Source: Selaginella moellendorffii (taxonomy: Eukaryota > Plantae > Lycopodiophyta). From it: 64,000 nt of DNA. This document shows positions 5,601 to 15,664 of the stretch, piece after piece; position 1 is the first letter of the stretch, and each line of letters starts with the position of its first letter. The notes below the pieces were generated by a model. That model was not told where the DNA came from. It searched no databases and was given only the letters and a program-made list of their open reading frames with translations. The stretch is taken from contig NW_003314274.1 of the NCBI RefSeq assembly GCF_000143415.4, forward strand, positions 2,090,623-2,154,622. Reading direction: 5' to 3'. Both the position numbers and the translations under genes were made by a program.

Positions 5601-6116
5601 AGAGAGCTAGCGATATAGGAGGGTTTATGGCTAGAGATTTCTAGGGTTTATCAAAGGCGATTTACGTTTTCTCGAAGAGCGACGATGTCAACGCACATTC
5701 TTCTCGGAAGGTACGAATTCGTGATCTCTTCTTTGTTTCTTTTTCGAATCTGGGGGCAATGGATTGAAGAATGTATCACTATAGAATGGCTTCTTTGTCG
5801 AGAAAAGCTATCAGAGTGCTCTGGTTATTCCTGGGAGTACCGAAGTAGCCAAACACGGCAAGACTGAATCAACCCAAAGCTCGGAGTTTTGTTCTCTTCC
5901 CCAGGTGAAAAGAAACGCATTGATGATGCACTGATCATTAGCCAACCTTGACATTTTTAGAGATTTCTGGTGATGGTTTTGTACAGAAACTCGAAAATCC
6001 TTGATCCAGTTTCCAGACGAGACGCTGATTTGATCAAGTCAAGGCGGTAACTAATCGACGAATTCCATTCATTCTATAAGAGCTCCAAAGATGAAGCCTG
6101 TTGCATTGCAACATAT

Positions 6117-8900
6117 ATGGCTGTTTGGTTCACCTTTTGCATGTCGCTTGCTTTCCTCGCGGTTGCTTGCTCCCAGGTGGATGACTGCACTAAACTTCTC
6201 GATTTTCTTGCTTGACAATATGATCTTTGAGCAGAAGGCGATTCATATTGTCTATCTCGGAGATTTGGACGCGACTCTTCACTCCGATCCCGATGCTGTC
6301 TCCGACTCGCATTACCAGCTGCTAGAAAACATCCTTGGAAGGTATAATTTTCATTCTCGGAGACGTTCCATAACAGCTTTGTTTTTGTTTTCTCTTGTGA
6401 ATGTATGCAACTCTGACGCTGCAAAGGCGTCTTTAACTTACAGCTATCGCCATGGATTCAATGGCTTTGCCGCATCACTTACAAGCGAAGAAGCCGCTCA
6501 CATCTCTCGTAAGCTTCAGTTCAAGAATTGCTCAGTTCTCGTTTTGATATGTTCCGCCACAGGGATACCAAATGTTATATCCGTTTTTCCTACTCAGAAT
6601 CTCAAACTGCACACGACCAACTCGTGGAGCTTCTTGGGCTTTGACGAGGACGGTGGCAAGAATGTCCAGTCGTTATTTGGTGATTCTGAAAGCAAGTCAC
6701 TGCGGCGAAAGGCAAACTACGGTGAAGACATTATAGTCGGAGTGATTGACACGGGTACGTAGTTTGCGTCTCACAAACAAGTGCTATGCTCTTCTTGAAA
6801 GTTTTCACTTCCATCGCTTCTATCGCAGGAATATCGCCAGAGTCCAAGAGCTTTGCGGACGATTCAATGGGTCCAATATCGCCGAGATGGAAGGGCACTT
6901 GCGAGCAAGGAGAGAACTTCACTTCCTCGCATTGCAACAGGTGAATTCGGTCAAACCAAAAGTTGGTAAACTTTCGGCTCTTTGCAGGAAGCTCATCGGT
7001 GCAAGGTTTTTCGAGCCGGAAGGAAGAACCAACACGGAGATATCTTCTCCAGAGACGCGAATGGCCACGGGACACACGCAGCTTCCATAGCCGGGGGCCG
7101 GTTTGTGGAAAACGTGAGCTGGTCCGGCTACGCAAGTAGCACCTTGAGCGGTGGCGCATCAAACTCTCGCATTGCAGCGTACAAAGTTTGCTGGGCTCGC
7201 CAGCAAGCTTTCGACTGCACAAGCGAGAGCGTCTTGGCAGCTTTCGAGGCGGGAATACACGACCGCGTGGGTGCTTTCTCCGTCTCGCTTGGCACAAATT
7301 CCAGCGACTACTTCTCGGATCCTATCGCCATCGGTTGCATCGTCGTGGTGGCCGCGGCAGGGAACAATTATTCCTTCGGCACTGTTGCAAACGCGGCACC
7401 TTGGATCATCACCGTCGCCGCCAGCACCATCTCTCGCAGTTTTACGTCGCGAGGCTCTCTCGGCAACAACCAGAGCTTTGCAGTGAGTAAAACTCTGATT
7501 CTATATCAGTAGTCTCGTTTTCTCTTCTCTTATGTTTTGATTACAGGGCTTGAGCCTGACTCGCCACACTCTCGGCAGGCGATGGTATCCCCTTGTGTTG
7601 AGTCTGGACGCTGGCATTCCAAACTCAAGCTTTACTACAAGGTACGCTGATGCCAAGCATGAACACATTCACAATACACCTTTTACATTACAGTGAGCTA
7701 GAGCGATGCGTTTCGGGATCCCTGGATCCAAAGAAAGTCCGGGGCAAAATAGTGACATGTCTTGATACGCTACCTCTTGGAGGAGGAGCTCGTCAAGCTG
7801 GGATAATTTTCTGCAACCGCGGCCCCCAAAGTGCTCGTCCTTTTGAACACGCACTTCCTGCGTCTCATGTCAACAGAGCCGAGGCAAATGCCATACAATC
7901 GTACATAAACTCCACAAGGTTTACTTTTTTGCTCGCGTAGAAACATGCTTGTGTTGCTTCATCTTGTAGATCTCTTGTGGCACAAATATCTCCAGCCCGC
8001 TACTCAACACTAAACCCGCACCAATGATGGGAGTATTCTCTTCGCAGGGCCCCAATCCCGTCACCCCCGACATTTTCAAGGTATGTAAGAATTAATTTTC
8101 AAGTTCTAAAAAAAAGACTTAGTCTCTCTCTTCTTCTTCTTCTTCTTCTTCTTTTCTAGCCCGATATCACAACTCCAGGAGTGGACATTCTAGCTGCATA
8201 CAGCCCTTTTGCAAACAATAGGGGAATATCGTATTGTGTCTGGAACTTCCATGGCTTGTCAGCATGTCTCCAGGATCGTTGCACTGCTCAAGGCATACCG
8301 TCCCGAATGGAGTCCAGCGGCTATCAAATCGGCAATCATAACTACAGGTAAGCACTATGTGCTCTCAGGAGAAAATCGGATTTTTTCTCTCGTTTGCAAA
8401 AGGTTTTCTCACTGATAACTCTGGAGAGCCGATCAAAGACGCGGCATTGCTTCCCGCCACCCCTTTCAACTTCGGTGGAGGCCACGTCAATCCAAGCGCG
8501 GCTGCTCATCCGGGCCTCGTCTACGATGCCAAGGCGCCCGACTTCACGGACTTTCGGATTGAGGCAAGAGAGACGATACATCTCGACTTTCGCGAACTGT
8601 GCCACACGACGACGCATGGCTTCCAGCGATCTCAACTATCCCTCCATCGCGACCTCGTCGCTCAGAGGCAAGAGAATCGTCCACCGGCGAGTGACGAACG
8701 TAGACGACGACGCTACCACGTACCGATCAAGCGTGGAGGCTCCAGACGGTGTTTTGGTATCGGTGGTTCCTCCAGTTCTAGAATTCGAGCGTAGAGGAGA
8801 GACCATAGCTTTTAAAGTTCGCTTCCAGGCAGTGAAAGCTTCCAACCAGAGCTACGCTTTTGGAACTTTGGAGCAATGGAAAGTACAAAGTGAGGAGTTT
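6117..8900 (+). pseudogene. Subtilisin-like serine protease (S8A, I9 prodomain, PA domain), frameshifted
   Basis: Signal peptide MAVWFTFCMSLAFLAVACSQ; motifs HIVYLG, YSYRHGFNGFAA, LHTTNSWSFLG, VGVIDTG (Asp), DANGHGTH (His), [12 protein letters not shown] (Ser; P>Q and G>R versus consensus). A 1-nt loss at ~7050 (SSP/RDANG), with further indels near 8000, 8550 and 8870. Confidence 0.85.
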
Positions 8901-9053
8901 ATAACGGCCATGCATATAAATAGTTTTTCAAAACAAAATAGTGGGGGTCTCCTAGGGTTTATGGGCGATGGCGTCTGGCGCTGGATTTTGGAGGGATTGA
9001 GTGGGATTCCACCTACATTTTGTGGGAATCGCTAGGGTTGCTTGATTCCGGCC

Positions 9054-10879
9054 ATGAGCGCCATGGCTTTCGCGTCTCCAGGGCTGCGATTTCATTCAAG
9101 AGATGGAATGTTTGCTAAGCTAGATCCCTCCTGCCGGATTTTGCCGCCCTTCTCGCTTGTCTCTAGCAGGTGTCGCGCATTCCCTAGAAAATTGGCACTG
9201 GCGATGTGTAGCTCTCAGCAACAGTCGCGGGTCTCGGGTTTGTGGAATTTGGGGCAGATCGAGAGGTGTCTGGAGGCGATTCATTGCGCGCTCGACCCCA
9301 AGCTCGCCGCGGTTTTGGTAGTGGTCGCGTGTTCTTCGTTTAGAAGGTCTGGTAAGAAGAAACTTGCTTATCGCAATCTTTCTTGGTGATTTATTTTTTG
9401 ATGTTTTGTTTGTAGAGAAGGACATTCTTACACCAGCCAAGCTCCAGTTTTTTGCTCAATAGCAAGCGAACAGGTGATAAAAAAAAACTTGTGTTAAATT
9501 CAAGCCCTGTGATCGTGTTTTTTTATTTTTATTTTTTTTCCATCTCTCAGCCAGCTATTAGAGCACAGATTCACGTCAAAATCAATCAAATTCCAGTAGA
9601 AATGTCGACGCCAGAGTCCGATATCAGTGCTTGGCTCGAAGATCTCAAAGAGGAGGCAATTCAGCGAGGCGTCGGCAAAGACACGGTGCTGGAAGCATTC
9701 GACGGTGTCAAAATTTCGCCAAAGATTATGGAGAAGGATCAAACTCAGCCAGAGAAAACGCTCACTGCGGAAGACTATATAAAAACGTAAGGCAACTTTT
9801 TGTTTTCTAGCTTTTAACACATTCTCTGCATTTTTGCTAGTATGGTGAGCCAGAGCAGGGTCTCGAGAGGTGTCCAGGCGTTTGTTGATAACAAAGCGTT
9901 GCTGGAAGAAATCTCTGCGGAGTATGGAGTTCCCGCGTCACTTTTGGTGTCCATCTGGGGGATCGAGTCCAAGTAAGATCCGCGTTCATAGATTTTGTCT
10001 CTTAATTGCTCTTTGCAGCTACGGTTCCTACACGGGTTCGTGGAATGTCATTCAAGCGCTTGTTACTCTTGCGTTTGATTCCCCAGAGGTTGGCGTAAAT
10101 CTATGATACTGAGTCGAGTTTACAGTGATTTGTTTTCTCGCAGGCAAGACGTAGAGCATTCTTCAGGGATGAAGTTTTCCATGCTTTGTTTATCCTTGAC
10201 AAGGCCGAGGGCCCGTCTAATGCAGCTGGCTTGAAAGGTTCCTGGGCCGGTGCCATGGGACAATGCCAATTCATGCCGTCTAGTTTCAGGAACTACGCAG
10301 TTGATTTCGACAGAGATGGACGCAAAGGTACTCAAAGGTTTCTTCTTTAGTGTCCATCCCTAAAATGTTATTCCCAGATATCTGGTCTTCAAAGGCCGAC
10401 ATATTTGCATCCATTGCAAACTATCTCGCTGAACATGGATGGGAGATTGGCGGAAAATACGCACAGAAGGTTTGCCTTCACTTTTCTCTCCTTAACCTGA
10501 TCGATTGGTGTTTCTGCAAGGTCAAAATTCCATCCGACATGGATAAATCTGTCTACGGTTTGGATATCAAGAAAAATGTGAACAGATGGTTAGAAGAAAA
10601 TACGATCACCGCCGCCGATGGAAGTCAGCTATCTGGTGACGAACCAGTCAGTCTGGTATGTAAGAATTCTCCATTTGCTGATTCTCACTCTTTCTCTCGC
10701 CAATAAATTCTTAACAGGTTGCTCCGGACGGGCCTTCGGGAGTAGCTTATCTTGTCTGGGAGAACTTTCGTGTTGTTATGCGATACAACATATCCATTCT
10801 ATATAGTCTTGCAGTTTACGAGCTTGCTGAAGAGATCACTGCCGGAATGACGGCCTTAGAATCAAAGGCAAACGAGTAA
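9054..10879 (+). CDS. MltB: Lytic murein transglycosylase, MltB/SLT_2 family, with N-terminal transit-peptide-like extension; ~9 exons, exon-2 junction ambiguous
   Basis: Spliced translation: WLEDLKEEAIQRGV..., YGVPASLLVSIWGIESNYG (catalytic Glu), ALVTLAFD, GSWAGAMGQCQFMPSSF, AVDFDRDGRKDIW (EF-hand-like loop), ASIANYLAEHGW, NFRVVMRYNISILYSLAV. GT-AG introns; stop TAA at 10877-10879. Confidence 0.93.
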
Positions 10880-11026
10880 ACCTTGTGAATTCCTTTTAAG
10901 TTTATTTAAGTGTGCTATCAGAAATATATTCCATTTCAATTATCATATGGTTAAGAATAGCATCGAATGTTAATATTAGTGAAACAATATCGGTATATAT
11001 AGGACTTTATATCATTGCAATCAGCA

Positions 11027-12738
11027 ATGGAATTGAAGTGTTTGGCTCTGGCTGCCTTCCTCTTCATCGCTTATGTTGCTGCAGATGGTTAGTCATGTAG
11101 TTTCCAAGGTTTTCCGTGTAAACTCATGTTTTTAAACCTTTTTCACAGATTTTCCATTCCCTCTTAGCGAGGCACACCAAGCGCCTGACTTGATTAAAGA
11201 TTTGGATTACATTGTTGTGGGTGGCGGAGCTGCAGGGTGTGCATTGGCTACAACACTTTCACAGAATTTCACTGTTCTTCTGCTTGAGCGAGGTGGCTCC
11301 CCTTACAATAACCCGCTGTTTATGAGAGAGGAGAATTTTATGCTTGGTTTACTTGATGAAGGAACACAAGGCTTTGTCAGCACAGATGGTTCTTGGAGTC
11401 GAGGTAAGCTTCGGGTGGGGGGTCATCGATCAATGGGGGATTTTGGGACCGTGCATCAGCCCAAGAAATCAAACAGATCGGACTTGACCCTGTTAAAGCC
11501 AATGCTTCCTACATTTGGGCCGAGAATGTGATTGTTTCCCTACCAACTTTAGGACCTTTCCAGACAGCTTTCCACAAGGGGCTGGTTGAAGCCGGAGTGA
11601 CACCGGATCTCGGTGCTACATACGAGCACTCTGTGGGGACCAAGACCGGAGGAACCTTGTTTGATGAGAATGGCCAGCGCCGACCGTCTTCCAACTTGAT
11701 CGCCGCTTATGCTAACCCGCAAAACCTTCAGGTCCTGCTGAATGCTCAAGCCGTGAAGATCCATTTCGATGTGTCTGGTAAGAATCAATCTTGGTTACAT
11801 AGTTATATAGTGACTGTTCTGCAGATTCTGGAGCTCCAAGGGCGATGGAAGTTGATTTCATCGACCGAAATGGAGGTCTTCATACTGCTTTTCTCAAACA
11901 AGATTCGGCCAGTGAGATTATCCTCTCCGCCAGCGCAATCGGAACTCCTCATCTTCTTATGTTGAGCGGTGTTGGGCCGGCTGATCACCTCAAGCAGTTC
12001 AACATCAATGTCGTCCTCGCCTTGCCTGTTGGCAAGAACATTGCAGACAATCCAGCCACAAGAGTCTACGTGCCATCGCCTCTGCCTGTTGAGTCTGCGC
12101 TCGTAAAGGTGGCGGGTATCACCCCCTTCGGCAGCTATATCGAGTCCCTCAGTGGAGTCCAGAACCTTCAGGGCAGCGTCATCTTCCAAAAGGTGGCAGG
12201 CCCAAAATCCACCGGAGAAGTGCTCCTTAGTAACGACAGCTTGGACATTACCAACAATCCCGTCATCACTTTCAACTATTACAACAACTCAGATGATCTA
12301 GCAACCTGCATTGGCGGTCTTAACATCATGGAGAAGTTCCTGCTGTCCAAGACAATGACCCCTTTTGTGAGCGGCATGCAAGCTATGCCATCGGGCAACG
12401 TGCTTGGCTTGCCGATCCGCAAGTTTACGTCACAGGAGGTTATCAACGCGACACTGAGTGCATACTGCAAGGTTAATGTTGGTACAATGTGGCATTACCA
12501 TGGTAGCTGCCGGGTTGGCCAGGTGGTAGACTCCCAGTACAAGGTGTTGGGTGCGGAGAGGCTCAGGATTGTCGATGGATCTGTGTTTGACTTCTGCCCA
12601 GGTACGGCAACATTTGTAATGATGGGAAGGTATGTGCAGAATTCTTATCCGTAGTTTTTACAATCTTTTTGTTTGCGAATGGACAGGTACATGGGATTGG
12701 AGATTATAGGTGCGCGGCTCAATAGCACATCCGCCTGA
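11027..12738 (+). pseudogene. GMC oxidoreductase (HOTHEAD/mandelonitrile-lyase-like), copy 1, disrupted
   Basis: Signal peptide, DYIVVGGGAAG, LLLERGG, WHYHGSC, LRIVDGS. Net 4-nt loss at ~11385-11422 causes a frameshift, and NPQ is deleted in frame from the GTNPQAT motif (~12606). Confidence 0.85.
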
Positions 12739-13938: not shown

Positions 13939-15664
13939 ATGGGGATCCTTGGCTTGTTCTTCGCAGTTTTCATTGCTTGTGCTGCTGCAGCGGGTAATTA
14001 TTTTAAAGTTATTTCTTATTTCTTGTTTACTGACAGTTTCTTTGCTGAAAACTAAATGCAGAATTCCCCTTTCCTCTCCAAGAAGCTCACAATGTCGAGT
14101 TGACGCAAGACTACGATTACATCATTGTGGGAGGCGGTGCCACAGGATGCGCACTGGCCGCAACACTGTCAGAGAACTTCCGCGTCCTATTGCTCGAGCG
14201 AGGAGGCTCCCCTTACAACAACCCACTGCTCATGAGGGTGGAGAATTTCTTCCTGGGGTTCCTGGATGATGGAGCTCAGAACTTCGTCACCACTGAAGGC
14301 GTTGCCAATGCTCGGGGGCGCGTTTTGGGTGGTGGATCATCGATTAACGCCGGTTTCTGGGACCGTGCCCCGGCTTCGGAGATCGCGCAGCTCGGACTCG
14401 ATCCCGTCAAGGCTAATACCTCGTACACCTGGGCAGAGAATGCGATTGTCTCGCTCCCTGTATTGGGACCTTTCCAGAGCGCTTTCCACAAGGGGCTTGT
14501 CGAGGTTGGAGTGACACCGGATCTTGGTGCCACTTACGAGCACTTCGTGGGAACCAAGACTGGGGGCTCGCTGTATGACAGCAATGGCCAGCGCCGGCCG
14601 TCTTCCAACTTGATTGCCGCATATGCCAATGCGACCAACCTTCAAGTTGTGCTCCATGCAACAGTTACAAAGGTCCAGTTCGATGGTAAGTTGTTTTCAA
14701 ACTCTTTTCTTGCTTTGAAATCACAAAATTCTTGTTCTTTTGAATCGAAGATGGTCTTTCCAAGCCCACGGCCATTGGAGTTGAATTCGTCGACGAGCTC
14801 GGACAAATCCACGCCGCGTTCCTCAAGGCTGACGAAAGGAGTGAAGTGATACTTTCCGCCAGTGCCATCGGAACTCCCCACCTCCTGATGATGAGCGGCG
14901 TTGGGCCGGCGGAGCACCTCAAGCAGAAGGGCATTCCCGTCATTCTTGATCTTCCAGTCGGCAAGAACATTGCGGACAATCCCGCCACCCGACTGTACGT
15001 CCCCTCTATGTCGCCTGTGGAGCCGGCTCTCGTACAGGTGGCCGGAATCACGCCCTTTGGCAGCTACATCGAGGCCCTCAGCGGTGTCCAGAACCTCCAG
15101 GGCAGCGTCATATTCCAAAAGGTGGTAGGACCAAAATCCACGGGAGAGGTTCTCATTGACAGCATGGATATCAGGCAGAACCCCTCCGTCACCTTCAACT
15201 ATTACAAGGATCCCGAGGACTTGCAGATCTGTGTGGGCGGCCTGAATGTGATCGAGGAGCTCCTTTTGTCCAAGAGCATGACGCCGTTTGTCAATGGTAT
15301 GCAAGCAATGCCATCTGGTAACATTCTTGGCCTCCCGATCCGTAAATTCTACCCCAAGGAGATGATTGATATGGCCCTGGGTGCGTATTGCAAGGCCAAC
15401 GTTGGTACCATGTGGCATTACCATGGTAGCTGCCGGGTTGGCCAGGTGGTGGACGCCCAATTCAAGGTTTTGGGCACAGAGCAGCTCCGGATTGTGGATG
15501 GTTCCGTGTTCGACTTCTGCCCGGGGACCAACCCACAGGCAACTTTCATAATGACGGGAAGGTATGCAAAACTGATTTCATTTAGGCAATGCTTCATTGC
15601 TGCATTTGTTTTGTTTCGTAGATACATGGGAGTGGAGATTACTTCCCGGCGTTTGACTTCATGA
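13939..15664 (+). CDS. GMC oxidoreductase (HOTHEAD/mandelonitrile-lyase-like), copy 2, apparently intact, 4 exons
   Basis: Signal MGILGLFFAVFIACAAA; DYIIVGGGATG, RGRVLGGGSSINAGF, ILSASAIGTPHLLMMSGVGP, WHYHGSCRVG, VDGSVFDFCPGTNPQAT. Canonical introns. Confidence 0.92.

Follow-up and report, generated by a model that had tools for sequence, protein, structure and literature searches.

A 64,000-nucleotide stretch of DNA from the lycophyte Selaginella moellendorffii (hereafter the window) holds a gene with introns and the motifs of a bacterial lytic transglycosylase of the MltB type, which raises the questions of whether this gene truly belongs to the plant, where it came from and what it may do there. 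Plastid peptidoglycan is established in moss, where it sits between the two membranes of the envelope, and inferred in lycophytes. Attention has so far gone almost entirely to the genes of its synthesis. On the side of degradation, a 2021 study by Utsunomiya and colleagues is reported to have tied chloroplast division to PpMltB, an MltB of the moss Physcomitrium (Physcomitrella) patens. The full set of Mur genes is reported to be kept in Selaginella, and chloroplast division in Selaginella nipponica is impaired by inhibitors of peptidoglycan synthesis. A sequence-only reading of this locus had named both the retained Mur genes and the moss link as background. The first agrees with the published reports, and the second was traced to passages of two papers (PMC12681378 and PMC13075712) where Utsunomiya et al. 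2021 (Plant Mol Biol 107:405; pmid 33078277) is cited for moss MltB and VanY in chloroplast division. The review PMC10784329 makes no mention of hydrolases, and no open paper on an MltB of lycophytes turned up in our literature searches.

An expressed nuclear gene with nine exons

The gene lies on the + strand at window positions 9054-10879, from the start codon ATG at 9054 to the stop codon at 10877-10879. Its nine exons contain 1362 nt of coding sequence for a protein of 453 residues, and its eight introns, of 46-77 nt each, all begin with GT and end with AG. The features are the following:

8942..9053, + strand: 5' UTR; the transcript contigs start at 8942-8981
9054..9346, + strand: exon 1; start codon, Ser/Arg-rich and acid-poor N-terminus (residues 1-60), hydrophobic segment (residues 75-93)
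9416..9473, + strand: exon 2; mini-exon of 58 nt that keeps the frame, linker residues 98-117; joint 9346/9416, with 57-58 letters between contig pieces
9551..9786, + strand: exon 3; linker, then the start of SLT_2
9841..9972, + strand: exon 4; IWGIES at its end, with the catalytic Glu238
10019..10088, + strand: exon 5; the NYGSYTG... segment of SLT_2
10144..10327, + strand: exon 6; GSWAGAMGQCQFMPSSF motif and DFDRDGRK acidic loop; the best part of the domain, 80 bits alone
10378..10469, + strand: exon 7; SLT_2 domain
10521..10655, + strand: exon 8; variable part of the domain, with no Pfam match alone, aligning within full-length homologs
10718..10879, + strand: exon 9; end of SLT_2 and stop codon, with no domain after it
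10880..10924, + strand: 3' UTR; the contigs end at 10890-10924

The present analysis establishes both the structure and the expression of this gene. Seven of the eight splice junctions are directly visible in transcript contigs of 1472-1538 nt (four runs, four studies), which also revealed the 58-nt exon at 9416-9473. We infer the remaining junction, 9473/9551, which adjoins a repeat that the contigs skip. Two other ways of leaving exon 1 were rejected: joining donor 9351 to acceptor 9551 is out of frame, and joining exon 1 to acceptor 9597, which is in frame, is contradicted by the transcript contigs. The alternative donor at 9351, 5 nt downstream of the one in the model, is used in one transcript contig (run X3), where it shifts the frame. 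The longest contigs include a short upstream open reading frame in the 5' UTR, with an ATG near 8947 and a TAG near 9033.

The locus is the S. moellendorffii nuclear gene LOC9649294: the protein of our model is identical at 450 of 453 positions (99.3%) to the NCBI entry 'uncharacterized protein LOC9649294 isoform X1 [Selaginella moellendorffii]'. An exhaustive representative search with the 61-residue peptide of exon 6 as the query retrieved a full-length Selaginella protein (P0002) that has the same length as the model and differs from it at 3 residues. Its upstream neighbour is a plant-type subtilase with Inhibitor_I9, Peptidase_S8 and fn3_6 domains, and downstream lie two tandem GMC oxidoreductases, also plant-type. 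Most of what had been read from the letters is thus upheld. The start and stop coordinates agree with the gene limits proposed there, the three motifs of the MltB/SLT_2 set fall in one frame-consistent spliced open reading frame on the + strand, the flanking genes are plant genes, and the spliced transcript on which that reading had staked its case exists. The introns it described are real; it overlooked the mini-exon, with which their total comes to eight.

A complete catalytic domain of the MltB_2/SltB3 type

The protein matches the Pfam family SLT_2 (PF13406) with 333.8 bits, against a cut-off of 24.3, over residues 143-438 and profile positions 3-292 of 292. The exons are collinear on this profile (positions 3-55, 57-99, 101-121, 122-179, 181-209 and 256-292). 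The three motifs are IWGIES|NYG at residues 234-242, with an intron directly after Glu-Ser, GAMGQCQFMPSS at residues 299-310, and DFDRDGRK|D at residues 317-325, also split by an intron. In 17 streptophyte sequences E238, D317, D319, D321 and D325 do not vary, and E238 remains nearly invariant once bacterial sequences are added to the alignment. The conserved DFDRDGRKD corresponds to the acidic loop that makes up an EF-hand-like calcium site in Slt35. The Pfam search of the full protein found neither PG_binding_1 nor any other domain besides SLT_2, and the protein ends 15 residues past this domain, as expected from the earlier observation that no C-terminal peptidoglycan-binding domain was visible.

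Family models and structures agree on the subfamily. P0002 scores 311.8 bits on the NCBIfam model TIGR02283 (MltB_2), above the cut-off of 248.45, and the orthologs of Marchantia, Ceratodon, Klebsormidium and Mesostigma score 304-314 bits on the same model. The cut-offs of the E. coli-type MltB equivalog are not reached (230.7 bits against 281.4 for TIGR02282 and 168.1 against 449 for PRK10760), so that a classification as an equivalog of E. coli MltB would be wrong. The name MltB that had been given to it is refined in this respect, the enzyme being a member of the MltB_2/SltB3 subfamily. The AF2 model has pLDDT >90 over most of residues 138-452. Its only significant fold matches in the PDB are SltB3, SltB2, SltB1 and Slt35 (TM on the target 0.72-0.87), with 5ao8 first in Foldseek (E 1.9e-25), followed by SltB2, SltB1 and Slt35. 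In the protein atlas, the matches are to generic Pseudomonadota SLT_2 clusters only.

The nearest solved structure is the MltB_2-type SltB3 of Pseudomonas aeruginosa (PDB 5ANZ, 5AO7, 5AO8; E 1.7e-62, 39% identity over 303 columns). Its catalytic WG-x-ES and GSWAGAMGQxQF motifs align with the Selaginella protein, E238 of IWGIES being aligned with WGMES of SltB3 (PDB 5anz). SltB3 carries a signal peptide of the bacterial kind and, at its C-terminus, a peptidoglycan-binding domain, whereas the Selaginella protein has a eukaryotic N-terminal extension instead. The alignment to an MltB_2-type enzyme of Sinorhizobium (326 aligned positions, 35% of them identical) ends where the C-terminal domain of that enzyme begins. 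E. coli MltB/Slt35 (PDB 1QUS, 1D0K) has the same SLT_2/GH103 fold (E 1.8e-31, Foldseek E about 1e-19), with an identity of just 27-28%. Residues 138-452 thus form a complete SLT_2 (CAZy GH103) catalytic domain of the MltB_2/SltB3 type, with Glu238 and the D-x-D-x-D-G-x-x-D loop intact, an assignment that the profile and fold comparisons establish. The locus is no contamination but a true nuclear gene with introns that encodes a complete lytic transglycosylase of the MltB type (SLT_2). The Selaginella protein would cut peptidoglycan.

An ancient family of streptophytes

Orthologs were named in Marchantia, Riccia, Diphasiastrum, Ceratodon, Sphagnum, Klebsormidium, Mesostigma, Chlorokybus and Closterium, and they range over streptophyte algae, liverworts, mosses and lycophytes. 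No seed plant is named among the matches that score above the bacteria. In the phylogeny, 17 streptophyte sequences form one clade (100/100 support) with an order like that of the species tree, and the streptophytes still form one set when Chlorokybus and Closterium are added. The trees exclude three chimeric or duplicated gene models (P0001, P0003 and P0016) and one sequence with the catalytic exon missing (P0044). P. aeruginosa MltB, included as an outgroup, attached inside the plant group by a branch of 6 units, and we removed it from the careful tree because this is a long-branch artefact. A roughly cut segment of P0265, a multidomain protein, gave a very long branch (5.2) inside the clade and was disregarded.

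Gene structure gives additional information on the age of the family. Six introns of the catalytic domain coincide in alignment column and phase between Selaginella, Marchantia (L083) and Ceratodon (L084). Two small insertions common to all streptophyte sequences are missing from the short alphaproteobacterial proteins described below. Since the clade resembles the species tree and the intron positions are common to its members, the gene is old and has come down by vertical descent rather than by a recent transfer. The transfer occurred at or before the base of Streptophyta and is not specific to lycophytes. Orthology and age are in this way shown by the present analysis.

By the tree and the intron positions common to both, the Selaginella protein is assigned as the ortholog of the moss sequences. 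PpMltB belongs to the same orthologous family, the comparison being made via Ceratodon and Sphagnum. The mosses of this family fall in the same 100/100 clade as the Selaginella protein, with the six intron positions in common, and have the same architecture, i.e., an N-terminal extension with a hydrophobic segment and a single SLT_2 domain. The Selaginella extension is shorter (about 135 residues versus about 200), its introns are much shorter (46-77 nt), and its host is a vascular plant.

Bacterial relatives and the origin of the gene

The best 80 of 185,579 species genomes, in a scan that covered 600 matching stretches, include 47 Alphaproteobacteria, 13 Gammaproteobacteria and no cyanobacteria, which are thus absent among the near relatives at this depth; more distant cyanobacterial homologs may exist. 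The nearest bacterial sequences are short alphaproteobacterial MltB_2 proteins of 320-345 residues (e.g., Pelagibius litoralis L002, Rhodocista pekingensis L024, Azospirillum L027 and Geminicoccaceae L009), which are 40-45% identical to the plant protein across the entire domain. They resemble it in having a single domain and no peptidoglycan-binding domain, and many of them share with it the GAMGQCQF variant; they differ from it in their bacterial signal peptides and in their lack of introns. The bacterial sister group of the streptophyte clade is a polytomy, with no single bacterial group as sister. We propose that the gene came from a non-cyanobacterial bacterium whose nearest living relatives would be these short alphaproteobacterial proteins, and that its acquisition, at or before the origin of streptophytes, would have been followed by vertical inheritance.

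Two other origins have to be weighed against this one. The identity to bacterial enzymes and a plant annotation that says merely 'uncharacterized' could suggest a recent, lycophyte-specific transfer or bacterial contamination of the assembly. This is refuted, and its probability is close to nil, given eight GT..AG introns of which seven are seen removed in transcripts from four studies, the plant genes on both sides, the single clade with orthologs from Mesostigma to mosses, and the six intron positions common to liverwort and moss. Endosymbiotic transfer from the cyanobacterial ancestor of the plastid, rather than horizontal transfer from another bacterium, would fit a presumed target structure that was inherited from the cyanobacterial endosymbiont, and the plastid peptidoglycan proteins MurA, MraY and DipM are reported to be cyanobacterial-related. 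It is nevertheless improbable in view of the lack of cyanobacteria among the best genomes above, a CAZy survey of 2011 that found GH103 in none of 42 cyanobacterial genomes (PMC3541169), and the reports that most enzymes of plastid peptidoglycan synthesis are non-cyanobacterial. The non-cyanobacterial origin that the sequence-only reading had advanced as a possibility is therefore supported.

The N-terminal extension and the putative location

The first 60 residues contain 2 acidic residues, 10 Ser and 7 Arg. This Ser/Arg-rich, acid-poor N-terminus resembles, by its composition, a plastid transit peptide. Of 14 full-length orthologs, 13 have a hydrophobic 19-mer (Kyte-Doolittle >= 1.6) at a distance of 45-165 residues from the N-terminus. 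In Selaginella this stretch is short, with about 13 strongly hydrophobic residues and a model confidence of 58-71, and a disordered linker separates the hydrophobic helix (about residues 75-94) from the catalytic domain. A lipobox-like VVAC is found at residues 90-93, after an extension of ~75 residues; its Cys is not conserved in all orthologs. The conserved succession of a Ser/Arg-rich N-terminus and a hydrophobic segment suggests a plastid enzyme anchored at the envelope.

A plastid enzyme or an alternative role

We infer a plastid location, a membrane topology, an enzymatic activity and a role in division along the following lines. After import into the plastid, the protein would be kept at the envelope through its hydrophobic segment. 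The catalytic domain would then cleave MurNAc-GlcNAc bonds in the thin peptidoglycan that the plastid has between its two envelope membranes; this would release 1,6-anhydro-muropeptides and let the wall be remodelled and split in plastid growth and division. The orthology to the moss sequences supports this putative wall-remodelling role.

Some eukaryotes use acquired lysozyme-like genes against bacteria, and the enzyme might likewise be secreted or stored for defence against invading or surface bacteria. The catalytic domain is intact, an enzyme of the SLT_2 family would cut bacterial walls, and the peptidoglycan-binding domain found in some bacterial housekeeping relatives is absent. We consider this unlikely, because there is no hydrophobic signal peptide at the extreme N-terminus, where the first hydrophobic stretch starts only near residue 75, and because all named orthologs come from groups reported to have plastid peptidoglycan genes, with no seed plant named among those scoring above bacteria. 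The family is also single-copy, conserved and species-tree-like, unlike typical expanding defence families, and the citing passages mentioned above connect its moss ortholog with chloroplast division. Repurposing, in which the protein would bind or cut another glycan or play a structural part, as proposed for some seed-plant Mur homologs, has precedents in several plant Mur homologs reported to have taken on other roles, e.g., AtMurE. We give it little credence, since the catalytic Glu and the whole set of substrate-groove motifs are invariant over roughly a billion years of streptophyte divergence, and the gene is found where the full peptidoglycan pathway is kept, not in the angiosperms, where repurposing is described. 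Overall, LOC9649294 is the lycophyte ortholog of the streptophyte 'MltB' family and probably a plastid wall-remodelling enzyme of ancient, non-cyanobacterial bacterial origin.

A broader reading, which we offer tentatively and hold to be rather doubtful, joins these elements. E. coli MltB is an outer-membrane lipoprotein. In all streptophyte MltB proteins, by comparison, a module built by the eukaryote (the transit-peptide-like N-terminus and one hydrophobic anchor) might have replaced the bacterial signal peptide and the peptidoglycan-binding domain, so that the enzyme would be tethered at the inner membrane of the envelope and have access to the plastid wall from beneath, unlike its E. coli namesake. 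The donor at 9351 might also give an untargeted form of 319 residues starting from Met135. The gene would also record a single ancient transfer of alphaproteobacterial type at the base of Streptophyta, distinct from the reported GH103 gene of Micromonas.

Implications for the plastid wall

These results do not overturn current views: the gene was already in RefSeq as 'uncharacterized', its moss ortholog has already been studied, and, with that counterpart linked to chloroplast division, its membership in a known family of plant genes is largely expected. This family goes back as far as the streptophytes themselves, has conserved introns, and is of the MltB_2/SltB3 type without a peptidoglycan-binding domain. 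Its conserved hydrophobic anchor gives a testable topology. The alphaproteobacterial-like, non-cyanobacterial nearest relatives fit the reports of mixed bacterial origins of the plastid wall machinery. Because no seed-plant ortholog is named, the gene is a candidate for marking lineages whose plastid wall is complete, and in Selaginella a vascular plant keeps and expresses the gene of a putative wall-cutting partner to the synthesis enzymes.

A spliced and expressed nine-exon gene

The six-frame ORF pieces at 9054-10879 on the + strand make up one bacterial-type enzyme, broken by short AT-rich gaps. When translated separately, they match the Pfam SLT_2 profile collinearly (profile positions 3-55, 57-99, 101-121, 122-179, 181-209, and 256-292 of 292), and this order shows that they are not chance ORFs. 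NCBIfam agrees on the same pieces, with TIGR02283 (MltB_2) as the top model for most. We fixed the 5' end and the exon borders by aligning public transcript contigs to 8800-11100. Four runs from four different studies provided one contig each (1042-1538 nt, spanning ~8942-10924). These contigs omit seven GT..AG-bordered stretches and reveal a 58-nt mini-exon between exon 1 and the exon beginning at 9551; the joint 9473/9551, which adjoins an omitted low-complexity stretch, was inferred from the reading frame and the contig coordinates. The nine exons total 1362 nt, or 453 codons.

Exons of the final model
9054-9346, +, exon 1
9416-9473, +, exon 2 (58-nt mini-exon)
9551-9786, +, exon 3
9841-9972, +, exon 4
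10019-10088, +, exon 5
10144-10327, +, exon 6
10378-10469, +, exon 7
10521-10655, +, exon 8
10718-10879, +, exon 9

Introns are 46-77 nt long with 27-43% G+C, and exons have 49% G+C. Because intronless contigs arise only from spliced RNA, the gene is expressed. The MltB-type gene noticed in the sequence-only reading, which had named the absence of a spliced transcript as grounds for rejection, is thus confirmed by collinear SLT_2 exons and spliced contigs. Exon 1 can end at either of two 5' splice sites separated by 5 nt: the donor is 9346 in three runs, in frame, and 9351 in the fourth (X3). The latter shifts the frame and leads to a TAG at 9460-9462 within the mini-exon; translation from the next in-frame ATG, at 9603 (Met135), would yield an enzyme of 319 aa that lacks the N-terminal extension. 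The donor-9351 form may be either a second isoform or NMD noise. The 5' UTR holds a short upstream ORF at 8947-9035 (ATG near 8947, TAG near 9033), present only in the longest contigs, whose starts range over 8942-8981.

The neighbours are plant-type genes, and the intergenic region upstream is very compact, the MltB transcript beginning within ~100 nt of the subtilase end.

Neighbouring genes
6091-9035, +, plant-type subtilase (Inhibitor_I9, Peptidase_S8, and fn3_6 pieces), upstream
11024-12654 and 14100-15661, +, tandem pair of GMC oxidoreductase (HOTHEAD-like) genes, directly downstream; introns short

An exhaustive representative protein search with the 61-residue exon-6 peptide returned as second match a 453-residue protein (P0002), 100% identical across the query. 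A word search identified it as NCBI 'uncharacterized protein LOC9649294 isoform X1 [Selaginella moellendorffii]', so RefSeq already contains this gene model, with no functional name attached. Our model differs from it at three residues (A7S, M51R, and A387C), the window representing an allele or another assembly. Contigs of different studies show single-base differences from the window (9072 G>T, 9205 T>G, 9931 T>A, and 9037 G>A). Since G9072T and T9205G, found in some contigs, correspond to A7S and M51R of the RefSeq protein, at least two alleles are expressed.

A predicted SltB3-like lytic transglycosylase

SLT_2 is the only Pfam domain found in the full-length protein (residues 143-438, 333.8 bits). 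The protein passes the cut-off of TIGR02283 MltB_2 (311.8 versus 248.45) and falls below those of the E. coli-type equivalogs (TIGR02282, 230.7 < 281.4; PRK10760, 168.1 < 449). Profile scores thus place it in the MltB_2/SltB3-like subfamily and not among the E. coli MltB equivalogs. Its top match among solved structures is Pseudomonas aeruginosa SltB3 (5ANZ/5AO8, E 1.7e-62), in which IWGMES pairs with IWGIES and GSWAGAMGQTQF with GSWAGAMGQCQF; SltB2, SltB1, and E. coli Slt35 follow. The AlphaFold2 model, computed from a 38-sequence alignment, has pLDDT >90 over most of 138-452, helices of moderate confidence at 66-79 and 82-94, and disorder at 1-64 and 96-135. Significant Foldseek matches are SltB/Slt35 structures only (E 1.9e-25 to 1.5e-19). 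Across 17 streptophyte sequences, the catalytic Glu238 and the acidic-loop residues D317, D319, D321, and D325 do not vary; in Slt35 this loop makes up an EF-hand-like calcium site. The sequence-only reading had seen no C-terminal peptidoglycan-binding domain, and the Pfam search agrees. A Sinorhizobium enzyme has such a domain, and its alignment with the Selaginella protein stops where the domain starts. The closest bacterial relatives, at 320-345 aa, are short as well.

An old streptophyte family

The named matches scoring above bacteria are exclusively from streptophytes: Marchantia polymorpha (already annotated 'membrane-bound lytic murein transglycosylase B'), two species of Riccia, Diphasiastrum complanatum, Ceratodon purpureus, Sphagnum fallax, Klebsormidium nitens, and Mesostigma viride. 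Several orthologs come from transcript assemblies, and the Physcomitrium patens sequence was not identified among the matches. A streptophyte profile also found Chlorokybus (430 bits) and Closterium (406 bits); the profile's source sequences and the database protein P0118 scored 517-751 bits, and the top bacterial proteins ~415. No chlorophyte, glaucophyte, or seed plant was named among its best 120 matches. The database gene models P0001 and P0003 are G+C-rich and alga-like, contain two to three tandem copies of the GAMGQCQFMPSSF...DGDGRR block, and probably represent a streptophyte-alga ortholog that was mis-assembled or mis-called. P0268 (Closterium sp. Yama58-4, 981 aa), an ortholog annotated as fused to ABC-transporter/RLI-like domains, is most likely a merged gene model and not a true fusion.

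We inferred a careful maximum likelihood tree (73 rows, 335 columns, LG+C20 PMSF). The phylogeny that the sequence-only reading had called for is clear on the plant side, where one 100/100 branch splits off the 17 streptophyte rows as a clade (bootstrap convergence was incomplete, correlation 0.959), but not on the bacterial side, where this clade attaches to the sample in a polytomy. Mesostigma, Klebsormidium, and one transcript row precede the land plants (99/96), which comprise mosses, liverworts, and a group with both lycophytes. The clade persists when Chlorokybus and Closterium are added, Chlorokybus being sister to Mesostigma.

For the intron comparison, we worked out the exact exon structures of the corresponding genes from Marchantia and Ceratodon. 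Six catalytic-domain introns occupy the same alignment column and phase in Selaginella, Marchantia, and Ceratodon, with corresponding exon lengths of 132, 70, 184 (Ceratodon 199), 92, and 135-141 nt. All streptophyte sequences have in common two small insertions relative to bacteria (alignment A3). The six common introns and the single clade of orthologs from Mesostigma to mosses exclude a recent transfer into lycophytes. Bacterial contamination, already discounted from the sequence, is excluded by the spliced introns, the presence of six of them in a liverwort and a moss, and the plant-type neighbours.

Bacterial relatives and origin

We scanned one genome per species (185,579 species) and retained the best 80 loci, which are 38-45% identical to the Selaginella protein. 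They include 47 from Alphaproteobacteria (Pelagibius, Azospirillum, Rhodocista, Stella, Sneathiella, Geminicoccaceae, Rickettsiales MAGs, and others), 13 from Gammaproteobacteria, 7 filed under Bdellovibrionota (mostly Micavibrio), and scattered other phyla. In CAZy, MltB is classed as GH103. A cyanobacterial origin of the gene is not supported, as none of these 80 loci is cyanobacterial and GH103 was absent from all 42 cyanobacterial genomes of a CAZy survey, which among 42 eukaryotes found it in Micromonas only (PMC3541169). Most plastid peptidoglycan-synthesis enzymes are likewise reported to be non-cyanobacterial in origin (PMC8227023). Given the bacterial polytomy, the donor can be named no more closely than a proteobacterium-like lineage, probably an alphaproteobacterial one.

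A putative role in the plastid wall

Moss chloroplasts are reported to be ringed by peptidoglycan between the two envelope membranes, and knockouts of peptidoglycan-synthesis genes to have giant chloroplasts. For moss, a citing paper names MltB and VanY as reported to act in chloroplast division. All ten Mur genes are reported for S. moellendorffii, and in Selaginella nipponica inhibitors of peptidoglycan synthesis are reported to impair chloroplast division. The Selaginella protein is orthologous to the MltB proteins of mosses and retains all catalytic features. Its most likely role is the same as theirs: cutting the glycan strands of the plastid wall for growth and division.

Residues 1-60 contain 10 Ser, 7 Arg, and 2 acidic residues. 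A Ser/Arg-rich, acid-poor N-terminus is the usual composition of a plastid transit peptide. The extreme N-terminus lacks a hydrophobic signal peptide. Of 14 full-length orthologs, 13 have a hydrophobic 19-mer that exceeds the classical Kyte-Doolittle threshold and is located 45-165 residues from the N-terminus; that of Selaginella (residues 75-93, score 1.82) is short. From these two features we propose envelope anchoring. The transit-peptide-like N-terminus would direct the protein to the plastid, and the mature enzyme may be anchored in the envelope, most simply in the inner membrane, with its catalytic domain in the intermembrane space. There it would cut the glycan strands, making the wall able to grow and be divided.

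A role in defence is possible in principle for an MltB-type enzyme, but the N-terminus fits it poorly, as do the family's single-copy history, which resembles the species tree, and its confinement to lineages retaining the plastid wall. Repurposing to a function unrelated to peptidoglycan is unlikely because the catalytic residues are invariant. The interpretation proposed from the sequence, a putative plastid wall-remodelling enzyme, is essentially right.

The family is not new: there is earlier work on the moss ortholog, the Marchantia protein already carries the name MltB, and RefSeq lists the Selaginella gene as 'uncharacterized'. To this our analysis adds the nine-exon model verified by transcripts, the subfamily assignment, the lack of cyanobacterial near-relatives among the best 80 loci, the distribution across streptophytes with conserved introns, and a conserved hydrophobic segment as putative anchor.
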